NCBI GenBank assembly: GCA_040285825.1
Contig: JAUPSS010000003.1
Span: forward strand, 3,410,001 to 3,474,000
Reading direction: 5' to 3'
Origin: Eukaryota sp. TZLM1-RC
Taxonomy: Eukaryota > Protista > Metamonada: BaSk clade
Length of the DNA: 64,000 nt
Part shown: positions 8,851 through 53,109 of the stretch, one piece after another
Layout of the letters: each line of letters begins with the position of its first letter
How positions within the stretch are numbered: the stretch's first letter is position 1
Translations under genes and position numbers: made by a program
Notes under the pieces: model-generated
Databases searched by the model: none
The model's input: only the letters and a program-made list of their open reading frames with translations
What the model was told of the DNA's origin: nothing

Positions 8851-9027
8851 TTTTTTTAAAAGGACTGTAGTTATTAATAATCATTTTCTCCTGACCATTG
8901 TATACACAATAGTTGATTAGGTTGGATTATTGATCTTTCCAGACTTCATTGATTTGTATTTGATCTGCTTTTTTGGATGAAGATACGACGTATTTGAGTT
9001 TTGAGCTTAATGAACCATTTGAATCAT

Positions 9028-14405: not shown

Positions 14406-14434
14406 AAAAAATTTGATAGATTTTGATTTATTAT

Positions 14435-17400
14435 TTGTTTTGTTATCGAATTCACCAGTTTCTACAATAGTTGATGGTGTTGAAATTCAAGCCAAATTAT
14501 ATTCAATTGATGTTATTTGTCATTTGGGTTCGTTTTTAGGAAATAATGATGAAATTACCAAAAAATTGTTTGAAAAGTTGAACTCAATTTCCGATAAAGT
14601 TGACCGAATGATGACTTTAGATATACAGAAACATATCAAATTTACCATTATAAGACTGTGTTTTAGTTCCAATTTCAATCATATATTTCGATCTACAAAT
14701 CCCTTATCACTAGGCCTTTGGCTCAGAAGTTTAATGAGTTACGTGCAAAAGTTTTGTCACAATGACTGGGATGTAAAATGTTCCAAATTCCAGATCATGC
14801 TTATCTTAGTCCACAATCTGGTGGTTTAGGTTGGACGAAGGCTTCTATTCTTGCCTCATGTGCTTTTATTGGTGGATGCAGAAATGCAATCTTTGAGTTT
14901 TCCGAAAGATTTGCAGTATGTGAAGATCTTTTTTTTACTCTACTAATTTTTATTCAACAAACAAACATGAAATTCACAATTAAAACTCCACATCCTCAAA
15001 ACCTGCCTCCCCTACATCAAAACAATTAATTGCTAAAGATTCAGAAAATTTCCCAAAAGAAGATAGTGAATCAGAAATTAGTTTTACCATTCCCTTAAAA
15101 ATAGAAAATACAATCCTGTTTTGCCAGTAAACACGATTGAAAATTCTTCCAGTTCTTTCCTTTACAACTACAAAAAAATCCTCAAGGAAAGCCATAGCAG
15201 CCTTACCTAGAGATCCAAGCAAAGAAAAAACAAATGGACATAAATTATATTGGGCATGAGAATTTTCATTAACCGAGGAAATGGGTTTCGCATATTTAGC
15301 AATTTTATATTTTTCGCCTGCAAGAAGAGGATTATTTACATCTGAGTTAATGAGATGTTCGTTACAGGAATTACAAGGGTCAATAGACATGGCGTCCAAA
15401 ATAGTAAAACTACCATTTAAACCAGGAACAACTAGATCACCTCTAGTCAGACCCATAGAAGCTCTGTTGTAACGCGTACTATCAATAATGGGATCATCAA
15501 GAATTAATTTTGATAACAGCGGTTCTAAAAAGGAATCTATTCGATATGATTTGCACATTACATAAATTTGGTCCCTGACGTTATTATGCACTTTGCTTCT
15601 AAACGTAATGAAATGTTTGCAGTTCAAAAGATGAGTAAACAAAAGAGGTTTACTACATTTACAAGTTAAATGATTGGGCAAATTGTTTGGCCACAGAAAA
15701 CAACGAAAACGCATGTTCAGAAGCCATTCATTGTTTTTTGACAAAAGTCCATAAACAGAGGGAACTTGAGTTACTAAAGCAGCAGCTGAACTATCACGAA
15801 TATCCTTTAAAAAATTACCGAAAGCGGGATTTTTAGTTTTGGCCAAGCCATGTCTTGCTTCATAATCCAAGCCTTCATATAATTTAACCAGATGGTGCTG
15901 AAGCTTTTTCAAGCAAAAACGTAAATTTGGAAGTGATCGGGTGGGAATTTCTTGAACATTTTGAGGAAAACACTGAATCCAGATATCACTAGGCAAATTT
16001 TCTAATTCAAATTGCAGTTGATTCAAGTAAAAATTTGATTCACCATTGATCAGATGAACATCAAAAGGGAACCTTTGGAAAAATTCAAAAACAAAATTTT
16101 TACCACCCCCCCAAAATGCTGTACGATGGGGGAGTGGACCTTAAAATATGAGTGAATTTTCCAGAATAACAAATTGTTAAAATAAAAAATTTGATGTGTT
16201 TCTCAATGTCACATTCAGCAATGAAACTAAGATCCTTGTCAAACTTCTCCACTAAATTGTTTAAATGGGAATAAATTTCATCCAAATTGCCAAGCCAACA
16301 TCCAAGAAACTTAAAAGCTTGTTGGTCGTAATTGATAAAAGGAATCTGAGCTCCGCCAATCATCAAAGATTGTTTTTCTTTACCAATCAAGAGACATTTA
16401 GATGGGTTCAAAGCTAAAACAATTTCTTTGTATTTCGCCGCAATGTCTTCAGAAACCCTAGAAATGCTTTCAAAAGAACCAATAATAGAAATGTCATCCA
16501 TATAGGCAACAATACGCAAATCAGGGAAATCTTGTTGTGTCATTTGAATAATATTATGAATAGCCAAACAAAACAGCAAAGGGCCAAGAGGATCACCTTG
16601 TTTCACACCAGAAGAAGATTCAAGGGTAAAGGAGTCAAAAATTAAGTCTGATTTTTTTTCCATAAAATAAATAAAAATATGCAGAAAGTTCAGGAAAATC
16701 TTGCAGAAGCACATCAAAAATACAATTACGTTTCACAGAATTGAAAGCATTTTTGAAATCCAAATTGAAAATATATTGATGTTGTTGACTATTGAAAAAA
16801 ACATCTGAAGTCATTGAAGCAACAGAAGCAGCTTCAATAGTTTTTATACCAAATTGGAAAGGCTTCAAATAGTCCCTTGCTTTAGGAGAAATTCTGTTAA
16901 AAATAAGCGAAGAAAGCAATCTGGTTAATGACTCTCCAATAGCAATTGGTCTAACTCCATCAGATCTATTAATGACAACACAAAGTTCCACTGTTTTTGC
17001 ATTAAATGAAGAAATTTCAAAAATTGATGCAAAAAAATGGAGTCGATGCTTTCCCCAATCATTTAATGGCAATATTGCAGAAAAGAATCTTTTAAATTTA
17101 AAATACACTCTTCGAACAATACAGAAACGATTGACTGGAATGTATGAAAATGAGCTTTATAATAATATATGCAGATCGGCTGTTTTAAATCAAGATCTTC
17201 ACTCATTGTTATTGGAAAAGGGTGTTTGTGAAAACAATTCATCAGATTCTTCACTTTTTGTAAACATTGTACCACGAAGATTTGGATTGTGTGCCACTAA
17301 TGAAGCATTTCTAACAAAAATGGGATTATATTTGAATATCCCCATTAATCAATTATTATCAAAAGAAAAATGTATTTGTTCGAATTCACCTAAACTCACT

Positions 17401-18020
17401 TTGCGCCATGCTCTGAATTGTTCTAAATTGATAACTTTTCGTTCTCCATTACATGATGCTGTTAGAGACACTGTTTTCAATATGGCACAAACTGCAAGAA
17501 TATCGTCTATCAAAGAGCCTCTGCTGAAGGAAACACTTTCTCTGAATAATTTTGGTTCTGATGATAAGTGTGATATATACTGTGATTGGATTGATAATTC
17601 TGAAGCTATTGTTGACTTTGTCTCATGTAATGTTGCAAATGATACTTTGGTTCACAGAAGAAAACTTAACCGTGTACATGCTCTTGATTCTAAAGCAAAA
17701 GAAAAACATAGCAAATATGATTAAGATATTGAAGAAGCTAATGCTGGTAGAAATACACAACTAGTTTTTATTGCTTTCCCATTTTCGATAAATGGAAGAT
17801 TATCAGTTGAAACAGAAACTTTTTTGAATGACTTTCAAAAAATGGTTCAAGAAAAAACAATGAAAAGATTTGATATTTTTTTATGGCGTTCTCGAATTCA
17901 ATTTGCCATTATTAATAGATTACCTCGGTTTTTCAATCGAATAAGAGGAGCTTTAGCCAGACAGCAAGCAGATCAAGATTTTGTAGAGGAAATCCTGGTT
18001 CAATGATATTCGTCCCATTA
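14435..18020 (+). mobile_element. CRE-like RLE non-LTR retrotransposon family B (5'-truncated), split by an insertion at 14930-16961
   Basis: Left part ends ...ERFAVCEDL and right part resumes LMTTQSST..., which are contiguous in the copy at 20867-21271. Has the C-x-C..H...C Zn knuckle, HDAVRD and RLE motifs. Confidence 0.88.
14930..16961 (-). mobile_element. CRE-like RLE non-LTR retrotransposon family A (5'-truncated; RT + Zn knuckle + RLE), TSD AGATCT, short poly(A)
   Basis: RT motifs RPIAIGE, DFKNAFNS, GVKQGDPLGPLLF and AYMDD. RLE motif RGDL..D...EKYKIAKY. AGATCT at 14924-14929 and 16962-16967, T-run at 14930-14936. Internal deletion near 16120. Confidence 0.92.
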
Positions 18021-18039
18021 GTTATGAATTAATTTAATT

Positions 18040-18290
18040 AAGGAAACAGTTAAGGGGTCCTTATATTTTGATTGAGCCATTGGTATAGAAGAATCATTAC
18101 ACACATCAGTGGATCTCACATCAGTAATAATGGTATTACCAGCAAAACCTTCAAGCATTAAATCACCCCTTCTTCGACCAAAAGAATTCAAAGTATCTTC
18201 ATCAACCAAACGGGACAGTAAAGGTTCTAAATAGGGAACAATTCTATGTGATTTTGACATACAATAGAGTTGATCTCTTACTGCATCATA
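18040..18290 (-). pseudogene. RLE retrotransposon family D fragment
   Basis: HDAVRDQLYCM...EPLLSRL...RRGDLMLEG...DVRSTDV. Confidence 0.8.
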
Positions 18291-19249
18291 ACTTTTGCCA
18301 CTGCAAAAAGATACTGTTTTTGAAAGAAGTAAACTCGGGCAACGAGACTTTGATAGATATTGGAGGAAATCAAATAAATAATCAAATACATGGCATTTAT
18401 TTCATTTCAACATGTTCTGGTTTACTGCGTCAATATAAACACAAGCAACTATCTCTTTACCATCCCTGTCCTTTTGATTGATCGAGTCTTTTACTATGCA
18501 ATGGATTTGGTGGATAAATTGAGGCTCGTTCCCACCATTGTCAGAATTGATTTTCTAAAATATTCAGTTCTTCTCCATGGGTTAACTCTCGCCTTTGCAC
18601 TAAGCTCATATTCCCATCGACTAAATCATTAAATGAGGAGGATGATCAAACATTCTATAAGTGTTGTTATATGTTCCTATTTTGTTGTCTAACATGTCCC
18701 CAAAATTGCTTACGGCCCTCTGAGTTGAAAACAATTAGTCCTTGAATAAAGAAAACAATATAATGATTATAAGATTGATTGAGCATTTCTTCATTTACTA
18801 TGGTTAATGTTCTAAATAATGGATCTGCAAGAACTACATCAAAATGTGCTCAATTCAATACAACTAATTGTTTTTGTTTCAATAATTTATAATTTAATTG
18901 TTTCGACCATAATTTTGCATCAATCAAAAATAAAGGGCATTTTGTTGACCTTAAATACATTTCGAGGTTGTTTCAGAATCTGATCTCCAATGTTGAAGGT
19001 GTGGTTTTCCAACCAAACAAAAAGTAAATTGAGCAAATATACAAAGTATCAATCATTGACAGATATTGAAGTAGATGTTGATTAAGTAAATTTAATCAAA
19101 AATAAAACTTTGTTTCAAGTCAATAACAAAATTGTCAAAATTGATCCTGCAATATCCAATTCTTTATTGAGCTACAAGTCAATATACATTGCAGTTTTCT
19201 GCATTCAATTGTCACTAGTCTCCTACAATTTCAGTAAAAATTTACAGTT

Positions 19250-19930
19250 TAATAGTTTCATCTGCTGATAATGAAGCGTTTGTGACACAAATGAGATTAT
19301 CTTCAAATACTCCAATTAAACGATGATTATCAGAATAAAACTGTATTTGGTCGAATTCGCCTCAACTCACCTTGCGTAATGCTCTTAATTGTCCTCAATT
19401 GAACTTTGGGTGCTTCATTACATGATGATGTTAAGGACAATGTTATTTAGCCGAATTTGATCTATTATGCAATAATCTTGTGTATTAAAGAGCCTTTGCT
19501 AAGAGAATCCCTACAATTGAACAAGTTCGATTCTAATATTGACCTTGATGTTTACTGCTGTTAGATTCAAAATTCTGAAGTTATTGTTGACTTTGTCTTC
19601 TGTGATGTTGCAAATGACATTATGGTTCGTAGAAGGAAAATAAATCTGTAAAAGCTTTTGAATTCAACATAAAGAACACGCTCAGAAAATATGAAAATGA
19701 CATCGAAGAAGCTAATGACAATAGAAATTGACAAGTTGTATTTATTCTTTCCCATTTCCTATAAATGAAACACCAGTAGTAGAAGTAGGAAAATTTTCAT
19801 TTATTTTTCTATCAACAATTGAAAAAAAAAGATGAAACACATATGAGATTTGATAATGTGGGACGTTTTAAAAGACGTTTCAATTTGCCAAAATTGATAC
19901 ATTAAAACTGTTTTTTATCAAAATGGAAAC
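19250..19930 (+). pseudogene. Old degenerate RLE family B copy
   Basis: Nucleotide similarity to 17290-17930, with many stops. Confidence 0.75.
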
Positions 19931-19959
19931 AAAACAAAAAAACAAGTTTGATCCCAAGT

Positions 19960-21595
19960 TACATATAATTTATTGAAATTGCACACTTAACAAAATAAAC
20001 TACTAACTAATGAGACGAAATTTATTGAACCAAGATTTCCTCTCCAAAATCCTTATCTGCTTGCTGTCTCGCTAAAACTTCTCTACTTCGATTGAAAAAC
20101 CGAGGCAATCTAGTAATTATGGCAAATTGAATTCGACAGCGCCATAGAAAGATATCAAATCTTTTCATTGTTTGTTCTATAACCATGTTTTTGAAATCAT
20201 TCAAAGAAGTTCCTGCTTCTACTAATAGTCTTTTGCTTATAGAAAATGGAAAAGTAATAAAAACAAGTGGTCTATTTCTATCAGCATTAGCTTCTTCGAT
20301 ATCTTTGTCATATTTTCTATGTTATTCATTCGCTTTATATTCAAGAGCATCTACATGATTAAGTTTTCTTCTTTGAACCAAAGTGTCATTTGCAACATTA
20401 CAGGAGACAAAATCAACAACAGCCTCAGAGTTCTCAATCCAATCACAGTATATATCACCTCTATCATCAGAGCCATAATTATTCAAAGACAGTGTTTCTT
20501 TCAGCAGAGGCTCTTTGATACACGATATTCTTGCAGTTCGTGTCATATTAAAAACAGTGTCTCTAACAGCATCATGTAATGGAGAACGATAAGTAATCAA
20601 TTTCGAACAATTCAGAGAATGATGCAAAGTGAGCTGAGGTGAAATCGAACAAATACATTTTTCTTTTAATAATAATTGATTAATGGGAATATTCAAATAT
20701 AATCTCATTTTTGTTATAAACGCTTCATTGGTAGCACACAGTTCAAATCTTCGTGGTACAATGGTCACAAACAGTGAAGAATCTGATGACTGATTTTCAC
20801 AATCACCTTTTCCAATAACCATGAGTGGAGATCTTTATTTAAAACAGGCGAGCTGCATATATTTTTCTAAAAATCATTTTCATACATTCCAGTCAATCGT
20901 TTCTGTAATGTTCGAAGAGTGTCTTTTAAATTTAAAAATCTCTTTTCTGCAACATTACCATTGAATGATTGGAAGAAGCATCGACTCCATTTTTCCACAT
21001 CAATTTTTGAAATTTCTTCACTTAATGCAAAAACAGTAGAACTTTGCGTTGTCATCAATAAATCTTCCCAATCTACAAATCTTTCGGAAATCTCAAAGAT
21101 TGCATTTCTGCATCCACCAATAAAAGCACATGAGGCAAGAATAGAAGCCTTCGTCCAACCTAAACCACCAGATTGTGGACTAAGAAAAGCGTGATCTGGA
21201 ATTTGGAACATTTTACATCCCAATAATTGTGACAAAACTTTTGCACGTAACTCATCAAACTTCTGAGCCAAAGGCCTAGTGATAAGAGGATTTGTAGATC
21301 GAAATATATAATTAAAGTTGGAACTGAAACATGGTCTTATAATGGTAAATTTGATATGTTTCTATATATCCAATTTCATCATTTGGTCAATTTTTTCGGA
21401 AACTGAATTCAACTTTTCAAACAATTGTTTGGTAACTTCATCATTATTTCCTAAAAACGAACCCAAATGTCGAATAGCATCAATTGAATATAATTTGGCT
21501 TGAATTTCAATACCATCAACTATTGTGGAAACTGGAGAATTTGAAAGTAAAACACATTAAGGTAAGTTGAGTCGAAGTCCAATTGTTGAATAATT
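19960..21595 (-). mobile_element. RLE family B copy (5'-truncated, frameshifted)
   Basis: RT thumb SPQSGGLG, Zn knuckle, RGDIYCD and 3' UTR; very similar to the other family B copies. Confidence 0.9.
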
Positions 21596-21639
21596 CTATA
21601 AAACAGACTGAGTTCCCAAGTTTGAAAGTTGAAAAGCAA

Positions 21640-22800
21640 GTTACCTTTGTAAAGCTGCCTTTATTGGAGGTGGTAAAAATTTTATTTTAGAATTTGTGAA
21701 TCGCTTTCCAGAAAAAATTGATCTCATTGAAAACTGTGGCAGCTCTTATTTTATTTCTTTGCAACAGGAAATTGAAACTCTTTCACCAAATTTTTGGTCT
21801 AAATGTTTGCCCTCTGATATTGTGGAACTTCCTTCAAGAAGCTTGCTCTCCTTACCACTGACTTTTACAAAATTACAGAAAAAAATCTTAAAAGTTTTAG
21901 AAAACTTGGATTATATTGTATGTCTTAGCTTGGCTAAAGAAAAAAATCCCGTTTTTGCAAACTTTTTGATTGATTTTGAAGACAATTGCTCAAATTGCCT
22001 AATCTCCCAAATTCCCAACATTTACGGCCTTCTACTTAATGATCACCAATGGACCACTGCAATGAGAATGAGATGTTTTCTATGGCCTTGTTCTTTACCA
22101 AATGATTTAATTTGTCGCTGCAAGAGTGTTGTTACGCTTTCCCATATTTTTAACTGTAAGTATTTTATAACTTATCGCTCAATTGTTCATGACTCAGTTC
22201 GTGATCAATTCTATGCCATGTGCAAAAGTTTCAATATAGAGGCATTTATAGAACCATTAATACGTAAGCTAACTCCAGATCAAACTGATGATTCCTTAAG
22301 TAAAAGAAGGGCAGATTTAGTAGCTCCAGGGATCGATGATGTTCTCAATGTTGTTGATGTTGTCTCAGTAGATGTCTGCAAAAATTCTGCTGCTCGTTTG
22401 GTGTATCTCGCTGATTCGCTGATTCTATCTAACGCCGAAAAAAAGAAAACAAAAAAATATGAAGAACCATTGGCACAATTAGGTAGAGTCGAACATGTGA
22501 AATATCTGTTTGTGTCGTTTGCAATTTCTCTCTTTGGCAATATTGGACCTTCCGGGTTACACTTTTTTCAAAACTTCAAAAAAGTTTTACTAAATAGATC
22601 TCGTAAAAAAAAGAATTCCAATTGCTGGTTTAATAGAATTGCTTTTTGCATTTTCAAGTCTATTCCAACAATGATTTCTAAAGCTCTTTTAGCTATTGGT
22701 GTAGAATATGAACGAAATGCTGTGAGTAGGTTTAGTAATAGTGATGCTTGTTTGGAGGATATTGAATACTAGATAGAATTTTATTTCTCAATAAATATTC
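21640..22800 (+). mobile_element. RLE family C 3' part (ORF 21696-22772)
   Basis: CRC..LSHIFNC..HDSVRD..EPL..RRADL..VDVVSVDV..AEKKKTKKY. Confidence 0.88.
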
Positions 22801-24798: not shown

Positions 24799-25491
24799 CA
24801 GTGTTCGGAATTTTGACCACGCGGTGGCACCAACCACCATGTGCCACCGCGTGGTCCACCTGGTGGTAAAATTGGACCACACGGTGGTGTATTTTTTAGC
24901 CTATAAAATGCTGTTACCTTGTCAAATCATTATGAACAAAACATGTTTATTTCAACTAACAAATACTAAACCCATAACTCAACTATCAAACCAAAAAAGC
25001 ATTTGAGATTGATCATATCATTCCTCCTCAATGTCCTCCGAAACATAAAGATTTCTGAAATAACAAGGATCGTATAGGACTTCCTCGCCCAGTGGATAAT
25101 CTACTTCTTGGTCCTGCTCTGCAACTTCTACCTCTGCAACTTCCTCCATCTCTTCCATCATCTCTACTATTTCAGCATTCATCCATTTGGGGTATTCTTG
25201 ACGATTGACCAGCAGTTTCTTCTTTAGTTTCAAGTTGCAATAGATGAACACTAAGGACTTCACTGGTCATTCTATTTCGCCTTTGATTCATTATGAAACC
25301 AAAAGCTTAGGGGAAATGCATTCAAAAATAGGGTGTTTTCTACCAGGCCATGGTATTTAGATGAAAGGAGAAAGGAATAATGAAATGAAATTGACCACCA
25401 AGAAAACCACCATGGTGGCACCAACCACCACGTGGCACCACGTGGTCCACCTGGTGGTAAAATTGAACCACCTGGTGGTGTCCGAACACTG
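24799..25491 (-). mobile_element. Non-autonomous hAT element (693 bp)
   Basis: TIR CAGTGTTCGGA/TCCGAACACTG; perfect 8-bp TSD CAAAAAAG (24791-24798, 25492-25499); transposase tail LVFIYCNL; CCACC/GGTGG subterminal arrays. Confidence 0.93.
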
Positions 25492-25516
25492 CAAAAAAGA
25501 AATGGCCTCGGTCCTA

Positions 25517-25757
25517 CTGTGAATTTCACTTATCATGCATTCCCCTGTGAAATTCACTCCTGTTTTCAACTTTCTCAATGTCTACTCACAGGCTGTAAGA
25601 GACATGTAGCATCATTTGACAAAGACAATCATGATCTTCATCAATGGGCTACCTCACTTAAATACACCTACTGCTTTCACAGAACAAAGCCTCGCGACTT
25701 GATGTATCTAAGTGGATCTACCAAATGCTACTAAGGCATTTGTAGATCGGTCTCAAA
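25517..25757 (-). ncRNA. Putative omega-RNA scaffold of the intact Fanzor (guide would continue into the flank, about 25516-25500)
   Basis: Conserved in three copies. Five predicted helical domains, GNRA tetraloops, a covarying terminal stem and a sharp 3' homology boundary. Confidence 0.8.
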
Positions 25758-25789
25758 AGATTTTGTTTCTGTATGCTCAGGTTCCCCAT

Positions 25790-27745
25790 TCATCTTCTCA
25801 ACAGAGCATCTGGGCAAATGTATCTTTCCGGCCACAATTCCGCTTTCTTCTTAATTTGAATATTTTTTGCAGCGGAAATATCTCTGTCATATACTATTTG
25901 ACACTCAGTACAAATACGCATCTGCCATGAGCCTGCTTGAATATTCTCGGCCATGCAACAACTTGACATTTTGCTTGTATTAAATTCACTGGTTGACAAG
26001 TGCTTCACGTCCTTTTGATAACACAACCATTTTCTGAAAGCCCTTGCTGATCCATATCGATTGACTTTTCGGCAATGAGAAGGGAAATTAGCAGAACCCA
26101 CAGCAAGATAGAGTTTTTCAGGATGTCCAGCCAGCCTTTGAAATTTGTTGAGACTCTCTCTGAACCGTCTCTCTTTTCGTCTGCGGTTATCAAATTTAAT
26201 TATTTTCCATTTCTGGCGATTACTTTCCAAATACACTTTCCTCCTGACCAAATTCCAATGGTTCAAATATTGGTTGAAATTTTGAACGGAATATTGGTTG
26301 GGAGAGTGTTTACTGGGTGAAGGTTTTGTCATGTATCTCCTGTTAGTTGGACAAGGGATAACTCCACATTGATTATCATTTAAAAAGTAACCACATAATC
26401 TTGATTGGCCAAGATCAACACCAATAAGGGGGCTTTCAGGTAAAATTTCGACTGGATGTCTACGTCTTCGACGGGGCATTTTTTTAGTACCCTTCAACTG
26501 TGTTTCTCTGGTTTTGTTGGCATTAGGGTCACTTTTCATTTCATTTTTTGATCTTCTTTTCTTTTTCGGTGGTTCATCCAGCTCATCTGTGTTTTCTGAG
26601 TCATTATTTTTACCTTCAAAGGTCAAAAGCAGTTCATTACCATTAGTTTTCAATAAAATTTTGTTAAATCTATTTTTCAAACTTTTTCTGTTGATATTGA
26701 ATTTTTGGAAAGGGCATTGTTTGAATGTTCGTTTCAGACATGTATTTTTGATAAACTTTGTTTTGGAAGATGATCCTTCAATAATTGGAAATTTTTTCAC
26801 AGAGTGGAAAATTTGTGAAGGTACCTCAATAAATTTAGAACCTTTATGAGAAGCTAAAGGTATTATTCTAAATTTCTTCCAGCAATGCATATGAGAAAAG
26901 AAAGTGAGTAAGTATTGTGAAATTTTAAGATTGAAGAGAAAAAGCTCACCAATTTCCTTTGATGAAAAAGTGATTTTATCATGTGAGGACAGTAGGGAGG
27001 CAGTGGTAGGAAATCTTTGGAGGAGATTCAAGATAAACCTACATGCATTCAATAAAAAAAATCTTTCTCTTGAATTATTCAAATTGAAATTGATGAGGTA
27101 TTCAAGAACAGAATCAACTACTACTTCCTCGGGTTCGGCTAGTAGTTCATCTGGCAAAAGTGAAAGAATATTATTTGCAAAGACATTTGTTTTATTCAGG
27201 GCTCTACAATGAGCACGAATAAAGTTTTTTGTCCAGGATTGACAAATTTTGGGTAAACTTGTCTTCACGTTGGAGGCCAATTGACGAGCCCGACAAGCAA
27301 GGTAAGGAGAAAGCCCTTTTCTATTGATAAAATTACAGTTCTGGGACTGCAGCCAATCATTGAGGAAAAGATTGAATGAATTTCTGTAAGGCACTAAAGA
27401 ATTTTCCCACACAGAAACAAGAGACCTGTCTTGGGGGCATTCAGGAAGAAATCCATTGTAAAAGATATGGAGTAATTGGCGTTGGCCTTTAGATGTGGAA
27501 GGCTTAGGAAAAGAACCAGTGGTGATGACGGTCATAAACAGATACCATACATCCTGTTCCACTAAAGCTCTAGATGCCAACGGAAAATTTAGAAGAAAAG
27601 ATTGAAGTAATAAAGAAGCTTCATGACAAATCTCGGTGACCACAGGAAGGTCAGTCCGAATTTGTTGCACCGCTGCAGGGGTCAGCAGCGAGTTAAGTGC
27701 ACAAGACCGAGTGAATACACGTGACACAGAGTGGGTGTCTGTCAT
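25790..27745 (-). CDS. Fanzor (Fanzor1-like) RNA-guided endonuclease, intact, 651 aa
   Basis: RuvC-I PLIGVDLG; rearranged RuvC-II STSEFNTSK next to the Zn finger (SCC...CTEC); RuvC-III YDRDISAAKNI; SV40-type NLS PPKKKRR. Confidence 0.95.
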   Translation of the reverse strand: MTDTHSVSRVFTRSCALNSLLTPAAVQQIRTDLPVVTEICHEASLLLQSFLLNFPLASRALVEQDVWYLFMTVITTGSFPKPSTSKGQRQLLHIFYNGFLPECPQDRSLVSVWENSLVPYRNSFNLFLNDWLQSQNCNFINRKGLSPYLACRARQLASNVKTSLPKICQSWTKNFIRAHCRALNKTNVFANNILSLLPDELLAEPEEVVVDSVLEYLINFNLNNSRERFFLLNACRFILNLLQRFPTTASLLSSHDKITFSSKEIGELFLFNLKISQYLLTFFSHMHCWKKFRIIPLASHKGSKFIEVPSQIFHSVKKFPIIEGSSSKTKFIKNTCLKRTFKQCPFQKFNINRKSLKNRFNKILLKTNGNELLLTFEGKNNDSENTDELDEPPKKKRRSKNEMKSDPNANKTRETQLKGTKKMPRRRRRHPVEILPESPLIGVDLGQSRLCGYFLNDNQCGVIPCPTNRRYMTKPSPSKHSPNQYSVQNFNQYLNHWNLVRRKVYLESNRQKWKIIKFDNRRRKERRFRESLNKFQRLAGHPEKLYLAVGSANFPSHCRKVNRYGSARAFRKWLCYQKDVKHLSTSEFNTSKMSSCCMAENIQAGSWQMRICTECQIVYDRDISAAKNIQIKKKAELWPERYICPDALLRR

Positions 27746-28100
27746 GTAGTGAGAATAAAGAGCTCATCTATCAAATTTTACACTTGTCACCCCATTTTCG
27801 ACTTCTGGTTGCCTGTTCTGGGAGGTTTTTAACCCTCAACTTGGTTTTGGGAGGTTTTCACTATTCCCACACTTTCCCAACTAGTGGTTCTTATATCTTT
27901 CACTCAACTTCTTTTCTGAGGTTTAGGAGTCCCTTGTAATCTTTCAACTTCTTTCTATTACTCCCTCAGTTCATGACCCCACTACTGGCCCTCCACAAAC
28001 TGCAACCTATGCTGCTCTACCACCGACGCCTCAACCGGTACAGTCCATGTACACACCTCCTGCTCCTCGCTCATCCGGTAATAATACCAGGAAAACTTTC

Positions 28101-28301
28101 CTTGAAAGTTCTGATTGGAAGTTAAACAAAACTGTTAGTCATTCATCAAACAAAAACACTTCTGTCCCTAGCGTTTCACTTGGCTTGAAGCTTTCTAATG
28201 GCATCTCGAAGTAAAATGTTAACATTGAGCTAGACGAACGAGAGCTGGAAGCCCTTTTCAATACTGTTGAAGATATCTCTGTTCATTTAGACAATCTGTA
28301 A
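28101..28301 (+). pseudogene. COMM-domain (COMMD10-like) 3' gene fragment
   Basis: LESSDWKLNKTVSHSS...PSVSLGLKL..K*NVNIELDERELEALFNTVEDISVHLDNL* followed by AATAAA. Has an internal stop and no N-terminus. Confidence 0.7.
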
Positions 28302-28609
28302 TAAAGTAAGTTATTTTGTAAATAAATAGTTGATGTTTTTTGTTGTTTATTTGAACATTATTGGCACGTTATTATGCTAAGAAGCTCCTGAACTGTGTGT
28401 TCTAGGTTTTCTGTGTTTTATGTCTACACCATTAAGTAAAAGTTGAAAACTAAGGCCCATAGATGTCGTAGGGAGAAACCAGACGTTGGTGCAAGATCAA
28501 AGATAATATTTTACAATTATGCAGTGTTCTGTGACACCAATAGAAAAACTATAATTAATTTCTTGTCAACTTTCATTGTAGACTCACTAAACTGATCATA
28601 AGGTAACAA

Positions 28610-28834
28610 ACCAGCAGCTATAATTTCATCACACAACAATAATTGAGAAGAAATAACAGCAGATGAACGAATCATATTTCTTAAAACACAATAGTTGTCC
28701 CAAATTCCAAGTTCCTTTGAATCACAGCCTTCTCCAGAAAAGACATCTAAACCAACAATGCCACCCTCTTCGGCTTCTTCTTGCAAGTTGATAATAGTCT
28801 CTTCAGCATCAAGACCAGAGTTTTGAGCAAGTGT
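28610..28834 (-). pseudogene. CCT6: Chaperonin CCT zeta C-terminal fragment
   Basis: TLAQNSGLDAEETII...VGLDVFSGE...GIWDNYCV..MIRSS.VISSQLLLCDEIIAAG. No upstream part of the gene is present. Confidence 0.88.
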
Positions 28835-28863
28835 TTATCTCAATAGGTCAGAAACACAAAAAA

Positions 28864-28893
28864 GGGATTAGGGAGGGATTAGGGAGGGAAGGG
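28864..28893 (+). repeat. G-run cluster with two TTAGGG hexamers (potential G-quadruplex)
   Basis: GGGATTAGGGAGGGATTAGGGAGGGAAGGG. Confidence 0.7.
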
Positions 28894-28989
28894 AAAAAAA
28901 AGGGATTTGCATTCAACCTAAAATTCAACCACAGTAATATTGTCGTTACAGAATTAACACAACGAAAATAAACTGTTTATCAGTCCATT

Positions 28990-29134: not shown

Positions 29135-29820
29135 TGTATTTGTTCGAATTCACCACAGCTCACTTTGCGTCACCCTCTGAATTGTTCGAAATAGACAACT
29201 CATCGTTCTCCATTACATGATGCTGTTAGAGACACTGTTTTTAGTATGGCACGAGCTGCAAGAATCTCGTGTATCAAAGAGCCTCTGCTGAAAGAAACAT
29301 TGTCATTGAATAATTTTGGTTTCGATGACAAAGGTGATATACACTGTGGTTGGATTGAGAAATCTGAAGCTGTTGTTGACTTTGTCTCATGTAATGTTGC
29401 AAATGACATTTTGGTTCAAAGAAGAAAAGTGAATCCTGTAGATGCTCTTGAATTTAAAGCTATAGAAAAACATAGAAAATATGAAAAAGATATCGAAGAA
29501 GCTAATGCTGATAGATCTTGACCACTTGTTTTTTTATTGCTTTTCCATTTTCTATCAACGGAAGACTATCAATAGAAGTAGGAAACTTTTTGAATGATTT
29601 CCAAAAAATGGTTCAAGATAAAACAATAAAAATATTTGATATCCTTTTTTGGCGCCCTCGGATTCTATTTGCTAGAATTGATAGATTGCCTCGGTTTTTC
29701 AATGGAATAAGAAAAGCTTTGGCTAGACATCAAGCAGATCAAAATTGTGTGGAGGAAATCGTGGTTGAATGAATTTCGTCCCATTAGTTAAGAATATATT
29801 TTGTTAAGTGTGTAAGTTTA
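29135..29820 (+). mobile_element. RLE family B 3' fragment
   Basis: HDAVRD...KEPLLKE...KGDIHCG...EKHRKY plus 3' UTR. Confidence 0.88.
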
Positions 29821-30049
29821 AGAAATTGAAAACAGTAATGGGGATACCAGTTTTCATTCCTCAAGTATTAACTATGTTGGTAAGTTAGGGGAATCGACTC
29901 GAGTATTGCCATGGACGAATCACAACAAACCAGGTTTTGACGTCTCACTAAGTAAATTTGATTATGAGAAAGATCTATTGAGTTTATTTGTAGAAGTTAT
30001 TTATGGTAATTTTTTTGGTTTTTGCAATCTAAATCAAAAAATTGTTAAT

Positions 30050-30549
30050 TATTGAACTTTTCAACCAATATTTGAACCATTGGAATTTGGTCAGGAGGAA
30101 AGTGTAGTTGGAAAGTAATCGCCAGAAATGGAAAATAATTAAATTTGAAAACCGCAGACGAAAAGAGAGACGGTTCCGAGAGAGTCTCGACAAATTTCAA
30201 AGACTGGCTGGACATCCTTCAAAAACTCTACCTTGCTGTGGGTTCTGCTAATTTCCCTTCTCATTGCCGAAAAGACAATCGATATGGATCAGCAAGTGGG
30301 TTCAGAAAATGGTTGTGTTATCAAAAGGACGTGAAGCACTTGTCAACCAGTGAATTTAATACAAGCAAACTGTCCAGTTGTTGCATGGCCGAGAATATTC
30401 AAGCAGGCTCATGGCAGATGCGTATTTGTACTGAGTGTCAAATTGTATATGACAGAGATATTTTCGCTGCAAAAAATATTCAAATTAAGAAGAAAGCGGA
30501 ATTGTGGCCGGAAAGATACATTTGCTCAGAAGCTCTGTTGATAAGATGA
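30050..30549 (+). pseudogene. Fanzor family A copy 3, 5'-truncated
   Basis: Near-identical to the last ~160 codons of the intact ORF, with frameshifts. Lacks RuvC-I. Confidence 0.93.
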
Positions 30550-30644
30550 ATGGGGAAGCTGAGCATACAGAAACAAAAACATTGGAAAAACTGATATTTT
30601 TTTTGAATTTTTTATTTTTATTTTTTTATTTTTTTTGAAAAACT

Positions 30645-30885
30645 TTTGAGACCGATCTACAAATACCTTGGCAGCATTTGGTAGATCCACGTAGATACAT
30701 CAAGTCGCGAGGCTTTGTTCTGTGAAAACAGTAGGTGTTTTTAAGTGAGGTAGCCCATTGATGAAGATCATGATTGTCTTTGTCAAATGACGCTACATGT
30801 CTCCTACAGCCTGTGAGTAGACATTGAGAAAGTTGAAAACAGGAAAGAATTTTACAGGGGAATGCATGATAAGTAAAATTCACAG
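30645..30885 (+). ncRNA. Putative omega-RNA scaffold, Fanzor A copy 3
   Basis: Homologous to 25517-25757; ends ...AATTCACAG|TA. Confidence 0.78.
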
Positions 30886-31791: not shown

Positions 31792-32715
31792 TTAATACTC
31801 CATTTCAATCTTTGAATAGTATTTCCGACAAACAGGACAAGAATAACTACTGTGACTAAACTTTTCCAAAGAACGTAAACAATTGGAGTGAAAGAAATGA
31901 CAACACGAAAGCAAGCTCGAACTTTTTCCACTAGTGAGGGACACAAGAGAATTGTCAAGTCCTCTACAGGACAATTTGATATCACCTAAGCAAATGGGAC
32001 AAGCCTCAACAGTATCTGGAGACTGAACTGTTAATCCAAGGCGGTTAATAACTGTCTGTTTGATTGATTGCCAATCAACTTCCGTCTGATTCTCGGAGCT
32101 GTACAGTGCTCTACGCAAAAGATCTCTTTGAAGCAGAATATCTTTGTCAATACTTGAAATCATTTGATCAACTTGCATCTGAAATGACAAAATTGGTGTC
32201 AAGAATCTTGAGCAAACATCTGCCATGCTTTCATAAACGAACTGCCGTTGCTGCTTCTTTGGGAGTAACTTCACTTGATTTAAGGTCTTTCTCACCTTCC
32301 ATCTCGCAAGACAGCCTCGAATAGCTGACTGGATCTTGATAGCAGATAAAATGGAGAGATGAAGCTTGGGGTCAAAGGAGCTCAGCTTCTCCTCATAATG
32401 TTGTCTACAGAGAGGACACGTGCGAGAGCTGGAATACTGTTCAAAAAAAGCTAGACAGTGGGGATGAAAAATATGGGAACATAGAAGCAGTGTGACTTTG
32501 TTACTGGAGAACCCATCAAGACAGATACAACAAGTGGCGTTGGAAAGGCAGTTCTCTCTAATAACAGCTTGGTTTTTAGCTTTGTTCCACTTAGGATGAT
32601 GTTCCGATGGACTGTCTACTGGGATCGTCTGCTTTTTACATTTTTTATGCTTTACATTGAGGGATTTTGAGAAGGAAAGAGTAAGTGACGAAGAGAGAGA
32701 CGCAACAGATGGCAT
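31792..32715 (-). CDS. RNF32: RING-IQ-RING E3 ligase, RNF32-like (likely start MPSVAS)
   Basis: Two RING-H2 domains (CCICL..LLCSHIFHPHC..FE..CPLCR; CPICL..LLSCCHFFHSNC..CPVCR) flanking the IQ motif AIKIQSAIRG. Confidence 0.85.
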   Translation of the reverse strand: MPSVASLSSSLTLSFSKSLNVKHKKCKKQTIPVDSPSEHHPKWNKAKNQAVIRENCLSNATCCICLDGFSSNKVTLLLCSHIFHPHCLAFFEQYSSSRTCPLCRQHYEEKLSSFDPKLHLSILSAIKIQSAIRGCLARWKVRKTLNQVKLLPKKQQRQFVYESMADVCSRFLTPILSFQMQVDQMISSIDKDILLQRDLLRRALYSSENQTEVDWQSIKQTVINRLGLTVQSPDTVEACPICLGDIKLSCRGLDNSLVSLTSGKSSSLLSCCHFFHSNCLRSLEKFSHSSYSCPVCRKYYSKIEMEY

Positions 32716-33347: not shown

Positions 33348-33689
33348 AGGCATTTTGTTTCAGATTTGATAAATGTACATAATCCATTGTTATAATTGAG
33401 AAATACCTCCCTTCACCAAACATAGGAACTTCAATGTTAGAGAACATCAATAATAATGTGAATCATAATCAATTAAATAGTAAATTGCATCAGATTAATT
33501 AGCCTTCATAGATCAATGAAAACGTGTGTTAGTCTTTACACTATTCTAGAGTGTAGATAGACTTATCTATTTGTTCTTGTTTATTAGCTTAATGTTCATT
33601 GTTTATTCATGGAGACCTCACTAGTGATGGTATTGAAATTCACTATAGCTCATATCTCGTCGTAATAAAATTACTATCTGTTCACAAAT

Positions 33690-36600
33690 ATGTCTGACTC
33701 TAGCCCACAGGCAACAATAATTATTGGCCGTTCTTCGGCTAACGAACAACAGGCTCCTCTTGATGCAGCCTCACCTCCGGGTGAAACCAACCCCAATCTC
33801 GGCCGTAGGGATTCCGCCTCCCATCTCGCCAACAATCCTCAGGACTCAGAGGGGGACCCTCTCACTCCTGCCAAGGATTCTCCTTCTCCTGAAGAAGCCA
33901 ACGTAGATACCTCGAAAGGGGATTCTACCTCCACGACTTCCAAGGAGTCGACAGATTCTTCTGGTCAAGCTCGTCCCTCCTCTACTTCTCCCAATGTATC
34001 TACTTACACTAAATCCAAGTGGCAGTATACCATGGAGAAATTCCGTAGGGATTTAGAACTATGGAACTTCCTGGATCTACTCGCCTTGAAGGTAGAACTT
34101 GCTACTCGTGCTCCCAAGGACCACTTCGAGCAGTTCATGATTCAGATGTTCCTAAACGAGTCTCCTCCTCGGATTCCTTCAGTTGAAGAAGATGGAGACC
34201 ACTTCAAGTTCTTGCTGCTACCCCAACCCTATGATCCATTGACCCATCCAGATCCGGATTGTCTCATGGATTTCTATCCATTCCGTTTGGATAGAGAATC
34301 AGCAGTCGAACCTAATCCAGGCCAAGTTTTCGCCGCTCGTAGTGCTTACGGTCAGGAGCTCTCGAGAGTGTGGAACTCGTTGGAAAACCCTCCTACTCTC
34401 AGAAGTCTCCCAGATAATCCCGAAACCACTCCCATACCTTCTCGTCAAGAGAAAGTAGCTGTTCATGGCGAGGATGAAGACGGTAACCCATGCGTTTTCT
34501 GGGTACCGAGAAGTCAAGTTCTCTCTCCTGATCCTTCCATCCCCAAACCCCTCTCTGGAGATTTGTCCGTTTCGGATCTCGACACTTCTCCTCCCATCCT
34601 TCTCCCATCTAACGCGGTGGATTTTGACTCTCTTAGCATGCCTAAAACATCCGAGTCCACCACCAAAATCAGGGACAGCCCCTCTCGTTGTTTCCCTACA
34701 ATCACTCGAAATCCCTCCAAACGCCTCTTAAATCCTTTGAGCACATTTGACCCTGAATCTTCGAATATCAATAGAATTTTTAGTCTGTCTTCCGTTTGTG
34801 CCAATAAATCAATTAATTGTCCCAAGTTTATAGAACTCTGGTTACAGATTAATAACATAGATGTATCTGGTCTCATTGATAGTGGTGCATCCATATCTGT
34901 CATCTCAAGAGACCTATCCACAAAATGCAAGATGGAACACAGCTCTGAATCTGTCAAATTCATTGGTGTTAACGGAGAACCATCAAACTCTGACGGCAAT
35001 GCCAAAGGAATCCTATCCTTCAATGTCGGTAGCATTGCCAAAGTTGTGCATCTTACCAAATCGTTACCAATCGTTCCAGGCAACAACATTCTAATTATAG
35101 GAATAGACATCCTATATGAACTCGGCCTCATGAACAACGACAGGGTATACATTCATCTCGATGAGCTTCACAGAACACTAATGTTACCTGAATCTGAGTT
35201 TGACCACAGAATTTCACAGATATCTGACTTCAAGGTGTCAAAAACATTCAAAGATCACGTCAACTCGTCAGGTTGTCAAATAAAGCTCAACAATCAATCA
35301 GAAAATCAACAGCTCCTCGCAACTCTTGAAGAGTTCAAAGATGTTTTCACGTTGAAACCCCATGAAGACGGCATCGACTGTAACCCCATGGACATCGATT
35401 TCTACGATGAAGACACTGTTGTTTATCGTCCACCTCGCAAGTTAAACCCTGAACGACTCAAAATCGCCAACCAAATCTTCGATGAGTTAATCGAATCTGG
35501 TTTCGCCACAGAATCCAACGGTAGATTCAGCTCCCCAGTCGTTCTTGTAGTTTATCCGGATCATCGGAAACCACGTCTTACAGGCGACTTCAGTGGCCCG
35601 AACGGAGTCAATGCAAACACTATCCCCATTGCTCCAAACCTTCCAAAGATCTCTGATGTATTAGAGTTCTTATCTCAAGCCAATTACATTGGAACACTTG
35701 ATCTCCCAAAAGCATTTTGGCAACTCAAGATCAACGAAAGAGACATCGAGAAAACCACCCTCAGCATTCCTGGTCGCAGTATCAGCTTCAACAGGGCATG
35801 TTTCAGTCTCAAGAACGTTCCCGCAGTGTTTCAAAATGTAATGTCCAACATCTTTAGCATCGAAGGCGTGTTTATCTACATCGACGATATCATTATCATA
35901 GGTAATACCCTTCCTCAATTCATCGACAGGCTCAAAGCCGTCCTCTTCCGCGCTAAAGACAAGCGGGTCAGCCTTGGCCTACCAAAATGCCATTTCAAGT
36001 CTAAAGATCATGAAATCAAGATTCTTGGTAGTATCTTCGTCAACGGTACACGCCAAATCGATCCCTCACGACTAACTGGACTAGTTGAGCTTCCAGCTCC
36101 CAAGACAGTGAAAGACGTCAGAAGCTTTGTAGGATCCATCAACTACATTAGAGACTGGCTGCCTTCGGTATCCGAAATCATATCACCTATCATCGAGCTT
36201 ACCAGAGGAAACCCTCGCCGTATCGAGTGGACCTCAGATCATGAACTCCGCTTCAACAAGATCAAGCAGCTCGTAAAGGAGAATATGCCATTGAGTTTAC
36301 CCCCAGCAGATAACCGTGTCCTTATCAGTTGTGACGCATCAGACATTGCTATTGGCGGCGTCATTTGGGAAGAATATGATCCTTGTGAACACAATGGCAC
36401 TCCTCTCATTGACCGTAAGGTCAGACCTATCAGTTTCTTCAGCAGGATTCTCTCCAATTCCCAAAAGAATTGGTCAACGATGCAGAAAGAGCTTTACGCT
36501 ATACTTCTCATCCTAACAGAATCATGCATCGAGAGTTACCTTAAAAGCAGGAAGCTCACGATATTCACAGATCACAGGAACCTCTCATATCTGGTAACAG

Positions 36601-36743
36601 CCCCTGATAAGAATCGAATTGTCACACGTTGGTTACCAATACTCAGTGAGTTCGACTTCAAGTTGGTACACACCAGGGGGAAGCCAACTAGTGGGCATAC
36701 TTGCTATTTAGACAGGTCCCAACGACCGATTTTGTACGCATAA
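33690..36743 (+). CDS. Gag-protease-RT-RNase H part of the polyprotein (disrupted near 36680)
   Basis: LIDSGAS, LDLPKAFWQ, YIDDIII, CDASD, KELYAI and TDHRNL. A frameshift plus stop falls where the sister element reads HTKGEENHWADMLSR. Confidence 0.93.
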   Translation: MSDSSPQATIIIGRSSANEQQAPLDAASPPGETNPNLGRRDSASHLANNPQDSEGDPLTPAKDSPSPEEANVDTSKGDSTSTTSKESTDSSGQARPSSTSPNVSTYTKSKWQYTMEKFRRDLELWNFLDLLALKVELATRAPKDHFEQFMIQMFLNESPPRIPSVEEDGDHFKFLLLPQPYDPLTHPDPDCLMDFYPFRLDRESAVEPNPGQVFAARSAYGQELSRVWNSLENPPTLRSLPDNPETTPIPSRQEKVAVHGEDEDGNPCVFWVPRSQVLSPDPSIPKPLSGDLSVSDLDTSPPILLPSNAVDFDSLSMPKTSESTTKIRDSPSRCFPTITRNPSKRLLNPLSTFDPESSNINRIFSLSSVCANKSINCPKFIELWLQINNIDVSGLIDSGASISVISRDLSTKCKMEHSSESVKFIGVNGEPSNSDGNAKGILSFNVGSIAKVVHLTKSLPIVPGNNILIIGIDILYELGLMNNDRVYIHLDELHRTLMLPESEFDHRISQISDFKVSKTFKDHVNSSGCQIKLNNQSENQQLLATLEEFKDVFTLKPHEDGIDCNPMDIDFYDEDTVVYRPPRKLNPERLKIANQIFDELIESGFATESNGRFSSPVVLVVYPDHRKPRLTGDFSGPNGVNANTIPIAPNLPKISDVLEFLSQANYIGTLDLPKAFWQLKINERDIEKTTLSIPGRSISFNRACFSLKNVPAVFQNVMSNIFSIEGVFIYIDDIIIIGNTLPQFIDRLKAVLFRAKDKRVSLGLPKCHFKSKDHEIKILGSIFVNGTRQIDPSRLTGLVELPAPKTVKDVRSFVGSINYIRDWLPSVSEIISPIIELTRGNPRRIEWTSDHELRFNKIKQLVKENMPLSLPPADNRVLISCDASDIAIGGVIWEEYDPCEHNGTPLIDRKVRPISFFSRILSNSQKNWSTMQKELYAILLILTESCIESYLKSRKLTIFTDHRNLSYLVTAPDKNRIVTRWLPILSEFDFKLVHTRGKPTSGHTCYLDRSQRPILYA

Positions 36744-36925
36744 ACACAATCAACACAGGCAACACTCGTTCATCAGCGAGCGAGACCACCTATTAACCGT
36801 TTCACCCAATCTATTATATCAGAAACTATAAGCCATTAGACGAATCTGCTCTTCCAGACCCAGACGACCTTCGGGATACCCACAAAATCCTCATTTTAAA
36901 AGAGAAATGTGCATCTGCAATCCCC

Positions 36926-38386
36926 ATGTTCGATCCTTGGTTGAGTAGAATCCGTTCAGAGCAAAGACAAGCTGTTGCAGCTCACGAACGTTCATTTAAT
37001 AACTGTTCCGTCCATCATCTTGACCTCTACGTTAACGAATCAGGCAAGATCATCATCCCGTCATCACTCATCAACGACACGCTCTTGATCATACATGGTT
37101 ATGTATCAGGCGGTCATCCTAGTATGTCTAAGAGTTTACGCAGGCTATCCTCTAGCGACTACTATTGGCCCAGTATGACTGATGATATGAAGAACCACGT
37201 GCGTTCTTGTCCATCATGTCAGAAAACGGCACCTGTCCCCAAATCTATCACTCTTTCCACCGGATCTCTCTGGGCTGACAAACCCTTCGCGAGATTGAAC
37301 GTGGATACCATTGGTCCTCTTCCTCCAGATCAGGAGGCCAATAAGTACATCTTAGTTTTCGTGGACAGTTTCACTCGGTATACAATCCTCGTGCCCCTCA
37401 AAGAATTAAACGCAAGGCTGACAGCCGACGCATTGATTTGGAGTGTGTGCGCAATCTTCGGTATACCTTACAGCATTCACAGTGACAACGGCCCAGAATT
37501 CGCCAACAACGTGTTTAAATCACTGTGCGAATTCCTGTCTATCAACGTGACGAACAGTATGCCAAATTTCAGTCAATCAAATGGCCTAGTTGAACGACGT
37601 CATAGAGTCATTTTACAAAATCTTAGGAAGCTCCTAATCGATTTTAACGCCTATGACAACTGGTCAGAATACTTACCTTACGTACAACTCTTAACGAATT
37701 CGTCTAAGAGATCTATCACAGGTTTCAGTCCATTCGAGCTTATGTTTGGGTCAGACGTCAGTCCCAGAGCTGACCCTTTATCAATTTTCTCCACCATCGA
37801 AAAGGCTACCACTGAGGTTCCTTTCATTCTGGATATCCAATCTAAATTTAATCGATTGAAAGAAAAACGAGAAAAAGCAGAAATCACCCAAACATCGAAA
37901 TCGCCGGAGGAGAAGCCAAGCACGAGTAATTTGCTATTCGAAGTTGGATGTTTAATCCTCAAATCATCTTGTAACTCCAAATTACATGGGAATTATCTGG
38001 GCCCATATTTGGTCATCGACAAACCTAGTAAATCAACTTTATTATTAAAGAATTTAATCACAGGTGTCGAATCTAAGGCTAGCATTTCACAATGCAAATT
38101 GTACCATTCTGACAAACCCACTGATGATGAGTTTCATCGTATCGTGGCCTCAGGTGATACTGAGGAACATCTTCTATTAGAAGTTCTCAGCCAGGATGGT
38201 GACGTGTGTCAAGTCGTATACGCTGGAGATGTACGAGGCACCGAGCCTGTCGACCGCATTAAGAACACCAAGGCCTACCAAGCCTTCCTCCAGACTAATA
38301 AGTCACGACCCCCCACTAGTCAACCTACTCGCAAACAACCTCGTAGAAGAGCTAGAAAAGACCGTCGAAAGGAGGGGAAGAAGTAG
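36926..38386 (+). CDS. Integrase with GPY/F motif and chromodomain-like C-terminus
   Basis: HHCC (IHG..GGHP..CPSC), NVDTIG, HSDNGPEF, NGLVERRH, YLGPY. Stop codon abuts the 3' LTR. Confidence 0.95.
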   Translation: MFDPWLSRIRSEQRQAVAAHERSFNNCSVHHLDLYVNESGKIIIPSSLINDTLLIIHGYVSGGHPSMSKSLRRLSSSDYYWPSMTDDMKNHVRSCPSCQKTAPVPKSITLSTGSLWADKPFARLNVDTIGPLPPDQEANKYILVFVDSFTRYTILVPLKELNARLTADALIWSVCAIFGIPYSIHSDNGPEFANNVFKSLCEFLSINVTNSMPNFSQSNGLVERRHRVILQNLRKLLIDFNAYDNWSEYLPYVQLLTNSSKRSITGFSPFELMFGSDVSPRADPLSIFSTIEKATTEVPFILDIQSKFNRLKEKREKAEITQTSKSPEEKPSTSNLLFEVGCLILKSSCNSKLHGNYLGPYLVIDKPSKSTLLLKNLITGVESKASISQCKLYHSDKPTDDEFHRIVASGDTEEHLLLEVLSQDGDVCQVVYAGDVRGTEPVDRIKNTKAYQAFLQTNKSRPPTSQPTRKQPRRRARKDRRKEGKK

Positions 38387-38605
38387 TGTTAGTCTTTACA
38401 CTATTCTAGAGTGTAGATAGACTTATCTATTTGTTCTTGTTTATTAGCTTAATGTTCATTGTTTATTCATGGAGACCTCACTAGTGATGGTATTGAAATT
38501 CACTATAGCTCATTTCTCGTCGTAATAAAATTACTATCTGTTCACACATATGTCTGACTCTAGCCCACAGGCAACACGTGCCTCATGATTTGATTTGCAA
38601 ATATG

Positions 38606-39510: not shown

Positions 39511-39579
39511 CAAAGGAACTTTTTTTGTCCACTGATGGGTGTAATGATTCTTTCATTCCATTAGCTCAGTCATGATACA

Positions 39580-53095: not shown

Positions 53096-53109
53096 CTTCA
53101 AAATTTAAA

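Follow-up and report, generated by a model that had tools for sequence, protein, structure and literature searches.

The closest described relatives of the locus reported here are Fanzor1 nucleases and the mobile elements that carry them, and the mechanism of homologs has been described (PMC10432273, PMC10711439, PMC10530073). Fanzor proteins share the signature D-X(125,275)-[TS][TS]-X-X-C4 finger-X(5,50)-RD (PMC3627910). They have Gly or Pro at the canonical RuvC-II position and the Glu beside the zinc site, and the RuvC-I fingerprint DPG is found "near exclusively" in them (PMC10711439). Fanzor1 scaffolds take in the terminal inverted repeat (TIR) and the target-site duplication (TSD) and run about 15 nt beyond (PMC10711439); for SpuFz1 of Spizellomyces punctatus, the TAM matches the left flank of the element (PMC10432273). 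Fanzor1 proteins have an enlarged REC with kinked REC2 helices, and their carriers are canonical eukaryotic transposons with TIRs and a TSD rather than IS607 elements. Characterized Fanzors cut 9 to 21 nt from the TAM, and even for these the native role is unproven.

We analyzed a 64,000-nt stretch of DNA (the window) whose source is Skoliomonas litria (TZLM1-RC), a haloalkaliphilic anaerobic metamonad and soda-lake protist (PMC11603281); the product of its main open reading frame (ORF) matches an entry of the NCBI protein set of Eukaryota sp. TZLM1-RC letter for letter. The Skoliomonas genome paper (PMC11603281) does not mention Fanzors, and a literature search found no publications on Fanzors of this genus. 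The window contains an intact-looking Fanzor element of 3,418 bp (25517-28934, minus strand). We interpret it as a DNA transposon of the cut-and-paste type that is non-autonomous and encodes an RNA-guided endonuclease of the Fanzor1 type, and assign this model as a whole, including the omega-RNA and homing, a probability of roughly 80%.

The element, its copies and its cargo

Copy comparison places the ends of the element at CTGTG...CACAG, and these boundaries agree among six left and seven right ends of TZLM1 copies as well as in copies of the sister species GEM-RC1. The preliminary description had delimited the interval 25500-27745, which does enclose the Fanzor ORF but is smaller than the element. 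The right end reads ...GTGAAATTCACAG|TA at 25517 and the left end TA|CTGTGGTTGAATTT at 28934; the left end (28837-28934, minus strand) carries an imperfect TIR, CTGTG-GTT-GAATTT, and in GEM copy L002 the TIR is a perfect 11 bp. The right TA (25515-25516) is a true duplication, because the insertion site of copy L006 is also present in the empty state, with a single TA, as a 98-99% copy within L007. At L003, TT stands on either side of the element. By its TA duplication, the element would belong to the IS630/Tc1/mariner type (PMC3627910), whose non-autonomous forms also have TIRs such as those seen here. No transposase and no serine recombinase is encoded inside 25517-28934, and an IS630/Tc1/mariner-type transposase encoded elsewhere in the genome would move the element. 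A Helitron2-borne Fanzor1 of the CRe type (5' hairpin, asymmetric TIRs, no TSD) was rejected on the 2-bp TSD and terminal TIR, and an IS607/Fanzor2 context on the missing recombinase. We also rejected a right end that abuts a host ATG: among copies with a listed downstream gene, the next called gene lies 66 to 1300 bp away, and no annotated start falls at the end.

The left flank of the element is TTA (28935-28937, minus strand), as are five of six TZLM1 left flanks; T directly precedes the TA in 5/5 TA left flanks (chance about 0.004). Because of this preceding T, and by analogy with SpuFz1, we predict that 5'-TTA is the TAM of the S. litria Fanzor.

The preliminary description had noted two more copies in the window, and both are present. 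Copy B (6199-8643, minus strand) is older and broken, with 87% identity, frameshifts and a clipped right end, while copy C (30059-30885, plus strand) is 5'-truncated with a near-complete omega-RNA end and its own guide. Genome-wide, a 90% cluster has 82 members, mostly truncated, and a second full-length copy of 651 aa is 97% identical, with 18 non-synonymous differences. The Fanzor ORF is under purifying selection; dN/dS is about 0.09 against GEM-RC1, with synonymous sites saturated (pS 0.75), and 0.26-0.28 between recent copies. The size of the cluster, the 97% identical copy and the ratio of 0.26 between copies support a family that is young, high-copy and recently active. It is somewhat unlikely that the family functions while the window copy is silent or dead and intact only through youth. 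The prevalence of truncated cluster members and the PAZ-Piwi proteins encoded in the host genus (L010) would fit a silenced copy, but here neither the leader nor the ORF nor the omega region is damaged, and the other full-length copy has diverged very little.

Several other mobile elements share the window. A second, distant Fanzor family is represented by decayed copies at 2513-4253 (minus strand) and 13698-14273 (plus strand), which are 47-51% identical to P0148 in the C-terminal part; the former ends about 170 nt ahead of a co-oriented PRP38 start codon at 2335. Two Gypsy-like LTR retrotransposons have near-identical LTR pairs (33526-38576 and 43312-47917), a solo LTR is found at 9022-9217, and many fragments of RT/endonuclease non-LTR retroelements (14433-22800, 29135-29827, 51082-53820 and 59078-61204) often lie beside or inside Fanzor copies.

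GEM-RC1 encodes full-length proteins at 56-57% identity, and Skoliomonas sp. TZLM3-RCL encodes several more distant Fanzor families. Three homolog searches and a scan of 1.84 billion representative proteins confined close homologs to Skoliomonas apart from one 121-aa Logan fragment. Scans of viral contigs returned one weak 21-aa match for P0054 and none for P0058, and a metagenome search with a 14-nt pattern, which is too short, gave chance matches, none fitting the RNA region or the protein. In a tree built from Skoliomonas proteins and the Logan fragment, without reference Fanzors, TZLM1 groups with GEM and then with RCL; this agrees with the host tree (PMC11603281) and thus suggests vertical inheritance of the Skoliomonas family. 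Prokaryotic contamination was rejected, given the many contigs, the eukaryotic flanking genes and a tree that follows host phylogeny.

Upstream of the ORF, all TZLM1 copies examined share a 133-bp leader (27746-27878, minus strand), a putative promoter/5' UTR. Between it and the left end, copies hold mosaics of host-gene fragments. Here these are a piece from the 3' end of a COMM-domain gene, containing an internal stop (27945-28300, plus strand; PF07258, E 2.4e-4), which only this copy has among those examined, and a C-terminal fragment of a TCP-1/CCT chaperonin (28593-28836, minus strand; PF00118, E 5.8e-17), which is found in many. The start of an MJ1316-RCC1 gene is also cargo in many copies; the MJ1316 clusters comprise 21 annotated proteins, and the 756-aa full-length gene accounts for two of these. 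At L133, the MJ1316-RCC1 gene and a decayed Fanzor core face each other head to head, and the cargo matches the initial 456 bp of this gene at 98% identity. Cargo thus comes, at least in part, from DNA flanking older or truncated copies on their 5' side.

Fanzor cores stand head to head with intact host genes at L133 7410-10271 (MJ1316-RCC1-BTB) and L005 1446-2820 (a 452-aa gene), where the leader may drive transcription in both directions; 5' fragments of these host genes recur elsewhere in the genome. A 66-bp older extension of the leader (27879-27944), shared with copy B (8568-8643), starts after TTA here and after GTA in B, and may represent an older, nested left boundary. The segment 28990-29044, immediately beyond the left end of the element, duplicates 55 bp of the 3' end of a nearby RING gene (31809-31863).

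The closest TZLM3-RCL family, 31% identical over the full Fanzor, lies outside the window in a 4.5-kb element, of which two copies, 96% identical to each other, occupy unrelated loci (L010 4470-9016, encoding P0117, and L011 4481-9024, encoding P0115 and P0037). The L010 ORF encodes 1,323 aa, comprising a short leader, a 2A-like DVEPNPG, an intact EXO1, an acidic linker and a Fanzor from about residue 580. The EXO1 part matches human EXO1 at E 6e-43 and has all of the acidic motifs (GID, IDG, FESD, TEDSD and GCDY). In a second RCL family the C-terminal part of EXO1 is still in frame. The fusion looks derived, because more distant Skoliomonas Fanzor families do not have EXO1. A literature search found no natural Fanzor-EXO1 fusion. 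The sister fusion suggests that natural selection has favored the cut-and-resect chemistry that engineers build deliberately.

One captured piece of cargo bears on cleavage. L007 1881-2152 corresponds to the empty target of L006 (691-952), stops 10 nt after the TTA and is joined to the leader; because characterized Fanzors cut at 9-21 nt, this piece could be a trimmed cut end and, in this one case, a footprint of native cleavage. More speculatively, the Skoliomonas clade might form a Fanzor1 subfamily of its own, in which guided cutting is linked to the processing of ends and the shuffling of genes. The RCL EXO1 fusion could then resect the break that it makes and so force homing, and TZLM1 elements would capture the ends that Fanzor produces when it cuts empty target sites, as in the L007 cargo. 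We consider this doubtful. If true, native Fanzor cleavage would have left a footprint in the genome, and Pack-type gene capture could be driven by a nuclease.

The nuclease

The ORF, at 25790-27745 on the minus strand, is uninterrupted over 651 aa, as the preliminary description had it; it is intron-free and encodes a Fanzor1-type protein, an assignment that draws on translation, Pfam, alignment and structure models. Its motifs begin at residues 392 (PPKKKRR), 425 (RRRRR), 441 (IGVD), 586 (SEFNTS), 596 (CC), 612 (CxxC) and 620 (DRD). We aligned nine sequences, with relatives down to 23% identity, and found D444, G550, E587, T590, S591, C596, C597, C612, C615, R621 and D622 to be invariant. 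This set includes all three RuvC acidic residues and all four cysteines of the CC..CxxC finger claimed earlier, namely, Asp444 of RuvC-I in VDLG (26414-26416), Glu587 of RuvC-II (25985-25987), Asp622 of RuvC-III in RD (25880-25882) and the zinc site C596-C597...C612-x-x-C615 (25901-25960). The canonical RuvC-II position is occupied by Gly550 (AVGSA), and with Glu587 lying in EFNTS beside the zinc site, this is the Fanzor rearrangement, as had been proposed.

The spacing from D444 to T590 and the RD fit the Fanzor signature; there are four cysteines, the first pair being CC with S594 where C is expected. TNG (26639-26647) is the counterpart of the Fanzor1 WED motif TDG (PMC10711439) and appears as TDG/SDG in relatives P0056 and P0042. 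Of the two basic stretches singled out at first, the SV40-like PPKKKRR (26552-26572), a nuclear localization signal (NLS) candidate in a basic loop ahead of RuvC-I, is conserved in GEM, but RRRRR is not (RQRRR in P0012, RRRPP in GEM).

RuvC-I reads DLG in all TZLM1 and GEM copies, a departure from the DPG fingerprint that counts against the preferred model; DLG is a derived change, because the sister families of TZLM3-RCL carry DPG or DPN. This shift within the TZLM1/GEM lineage, together with the altered zinc site and the strong preference for TTA insertion, would also suit a protein that is guided by RNA to bind DNA but cuts it little or not at all, similar to TldR/Cas12m and acting, for example, in regulation or transposition target selection. 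Nuclease-dead derivatives usually lack the acidic residues. Here the three are kept in every copy and species spanning them, under strong purifying selection, which makes a binder improbable. By analogy with its homologs, the 651-aa protein would be expected to carry out RNA-guided, TAM-dependent cleavage.

In Pfam, the TNB zinc domain PF07282 is the sole match (28.2 bits; cutoff, 26.3), so that the profile search for TnpB similarity proposed at the outset was positive. Sequence searches of the PDB matched the TNB region alone, with no match in the WED-RuvC part. The model built from residues 285-651 matched Cas12f, TnpB and Fanzor folds at Z 11.3-11.9, with 16 structure matches at E<=1e-3, although its confidence is low (pLDDT 55) and the scores do not separate Fanzor1 from Fanzor2/TnpB. 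Against viral structures, insect-virus Fanzor1-like proteins are among its top matches (E 5e-9 and 7e-7), and its best Atlas/ESM neighbors are NCLDV clusters annotated PF07282/DUF8286 (0.98). The full-length AlphaFold model has a pLDDT of only 43; its top four PDB matches are all SpuFz1, at weak E values of 0.007-0.024. The N-terminal half, long and helical in this model, was initially described as lineage-specific. That holds for its sequence, but SpuFz1 as the top PDB match and a lead from residues 1-300 to NCLDV DUF8286 clusters (0.91) indicate that it is probably a diverged Fanzor1 REC/WED region. Together, the D-E-D triad, the rearranged Glu, PF07282 and the fold support the Fanzor identity proposed at first; affinity to Fanzor1 rests on motifs, size and context rather than on a reference tree.

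The probable right-end RNA and a proposed model for homing

The 3' region of the element (25517-25757, minus strand) is a probable omega-RNA, with a multi-helix scaffold of about 240 nt suggested by folding, conservation and covariation. On the minus strand, 25515-25760 has a folding energy of -80.7 kcal/mol (z -5.3), and its GEM counterpart forms the same helices (z -5.6). Other 240-nt windows of the element reach z -2.7 or weaker, except the one overlapping the 3' region; a palindromic hAT end outside the element reaches -4.3. The region is 79-81% identical between TZLM1 and GEM, and synonymous sites of the ORF are at saturation. Of 76 consensus pairs, in which 98% of cells pair, six have changed on both sides (comparing two lineages only), and many more differ by G-U-type one-sided changes on the minus strand. 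The terminal 11-bp hairpin (25519-25557, minus strand) includes the right TIR and a variable loop and shows a compensatory C-G to U-A change in GEM. These data bear out the conserved structured 3' region reported from the sequence at first. An Rfam search of the region gave no real match. The scaffold is longer than solved Fanzor1 RNAs, which have 75-150 nt (PMC11423790). Counting against the preferred model, the RCL sister element ends 44 bp past its stop, with no similar 3' RNA fold there. At L001, a 2.1-kb retroelement with an 11-bp TSD (6215-8324) sits within the right-end terminal hairpin and splits the omega-RNA end of that copy.

Two readings of this structure other than an omega-RNA are, taken together, highly improbable: an end that acts at the DNA level, through transposase-binding subterminal repeats or a hairpin like that of Helitron2, and a 3' UTR element of the mRNA. 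In their favor, the TIR and the terminal hairpin overlap, truncation at the 5' side with the 3' end left intact is common among copies, as it is in Helitron2-borne CRe elements, and the plus strand folds too (z -4.2). Against them, the stronger fold and the one-sided G-U-type changes are on the minus strand, the fold spans about 240 nt while the left end has nothing comparable, the TA duplication and perfect GEM TIR favor a DDE element, and overlap of TIR and omega-RNA is normal in Fanzor1 (PMC10711439).

Conservation stops sharply at CACAG|TA, and the flanks beyond the TA differ in every copy, consistent with the locus-specific guide proposed earlier; we place the predicted guide at 25495-25514 (minus strand), its position following PMC10711439. 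Among the sequences examined, which do not cover the whole genome, the predicted guides had no match with a TAM. A hAT mini-element of 693 bp (24799-25491; TIRs CAGTGTTCGGA, 8-bp TSD CAAAAAAG), with 68-bp direct repeats close to both ends, adjoins the predicted guide; destruction of the guide by this insertion was rejected, as the first 23 nt of the flank are unchanged. Fragments of hAT transposase at 57036-58447 (minus strand; PF05699 match at 57036-57779) and 39103-39564 (plus strand) are a possible partner of the mini-element.

In the transposon-Fanzor model, a TA-specific DDE transposase acting in trans would move the element into (T)TA sites. Transcription of the RNA of about 240 nt would run over the right end and the TA and continue for about 15-20 nt in the flank, and this stretch of flank would serve as the guide. 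The RNP would recognize 5'-TTA followed by the guide sequence, a junction that would exist only at empty or excised alleles; it would cut the empty allele, and homologous repair from the filled allele would restore or spread the element. Truncated copies such as C could supply additional guides in trans, and the host-gene fragments 5' of the ORF would be passengers from DNA beside earlier copies. Because the family is young and high-copy and the host culturable, this proposed native role, homing at excision sites, is testable via polymorphic empty and filled sites.

Comparison with known systems

The preliminary description spoke of a new eukaryotic OMEGA family, which is overstated: motifs and architecture are those of a Fanzor1 in a non-autonomous, TA-duplicating TIR element, as in Spu-1. 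The S. litria element is best described as a divergent Fanzor1 like SpuFz1. Its zinc site is altered and it departs from the DPG fingerprint, so it is no plain member, but neither does it represent a system of a new kind. It adds free-living metamonads to the hosts of Fanzors, an extension on which we found no publication, and provides a complete, sharply bounded candidate editor: 651 aa, intron-free, with an NLS candidate, scaffold boundaries and a predicted TTA TAM.

SpuFz1 and its element Spu-1 (PMC10432273, PMC3627910) share with it a single-ORF non-autonomous element with inverted repeats; numerous full, partial and omega-only copies; an omega-RNA at the right end (probable in S. litria); a protein of 600-650 aa with a rearranged RuvC-II; and a TAM that ends in TA and equals the left flank (predicted in S. 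litria). However, SpuFz1 has no significant sequence match to the S. litria protein (profile E 0.75). It has DPN where S. litria has DLG, a scaffold of about 90 nt rather than about 240 nt, and the TAM CATA rather than the predicted TTA; Spu-1 has 30-nt inverted repeats in place of a short imperfect TIR and lacks the upstream host-gene cargo.

Fanzor1 proteins of insect viruses and NCLDVs (the HAgv-1/SfAV group, Tipula nudivirus and Tetraselmis virus) are the best viral structural and language-model neighbors, and their elements are likewise compact, with TIRs, a short TSD and no transposase; they differ in their 14-19% identity in structural alignments and in a TSD of TTAN rather than TA. Among Fanzor1 in Tc1/mariner elements (PUl-4 and PGv-1; PMC3627910), PUl-4 also has a TA TSD and encodes a Fanzor only, and MCi-2 of Mucor (PMC3627910) also combines a variable 5' region with a constant 3' region. 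Unlike in PUl-4, PGv-1 and MCi-2, the variable 5' part in S. litria consists of host-gene fragments that can be identified, joined as a mosaic, and one parent locus has been traced (L133).

Fanzor2 (ApmFz2 and MmeFz2) and the IS607 pro-Fanzor TnpB have the rearranged Glu as well, and RuvC/TNB fold scores are equal to those of Fanzor1 (Z 11.3). In contrast to these, the S. litria element has no serine recombinase, its protein has 440 residues before RuvC-I and a TDG-like WED motif, and its RCL relatives have DPN, as in SpuFz1. Finally, Pack-TYPE elements (Pack-MULE and Pack-CACTA; PMC8903248) are also non-autonomous TIR elements with mosaics of host-gene fragments, whereas the S. litria element has its own intact nuclease gene and cargo that comes at least partly from DNA directly 5' of older copies.
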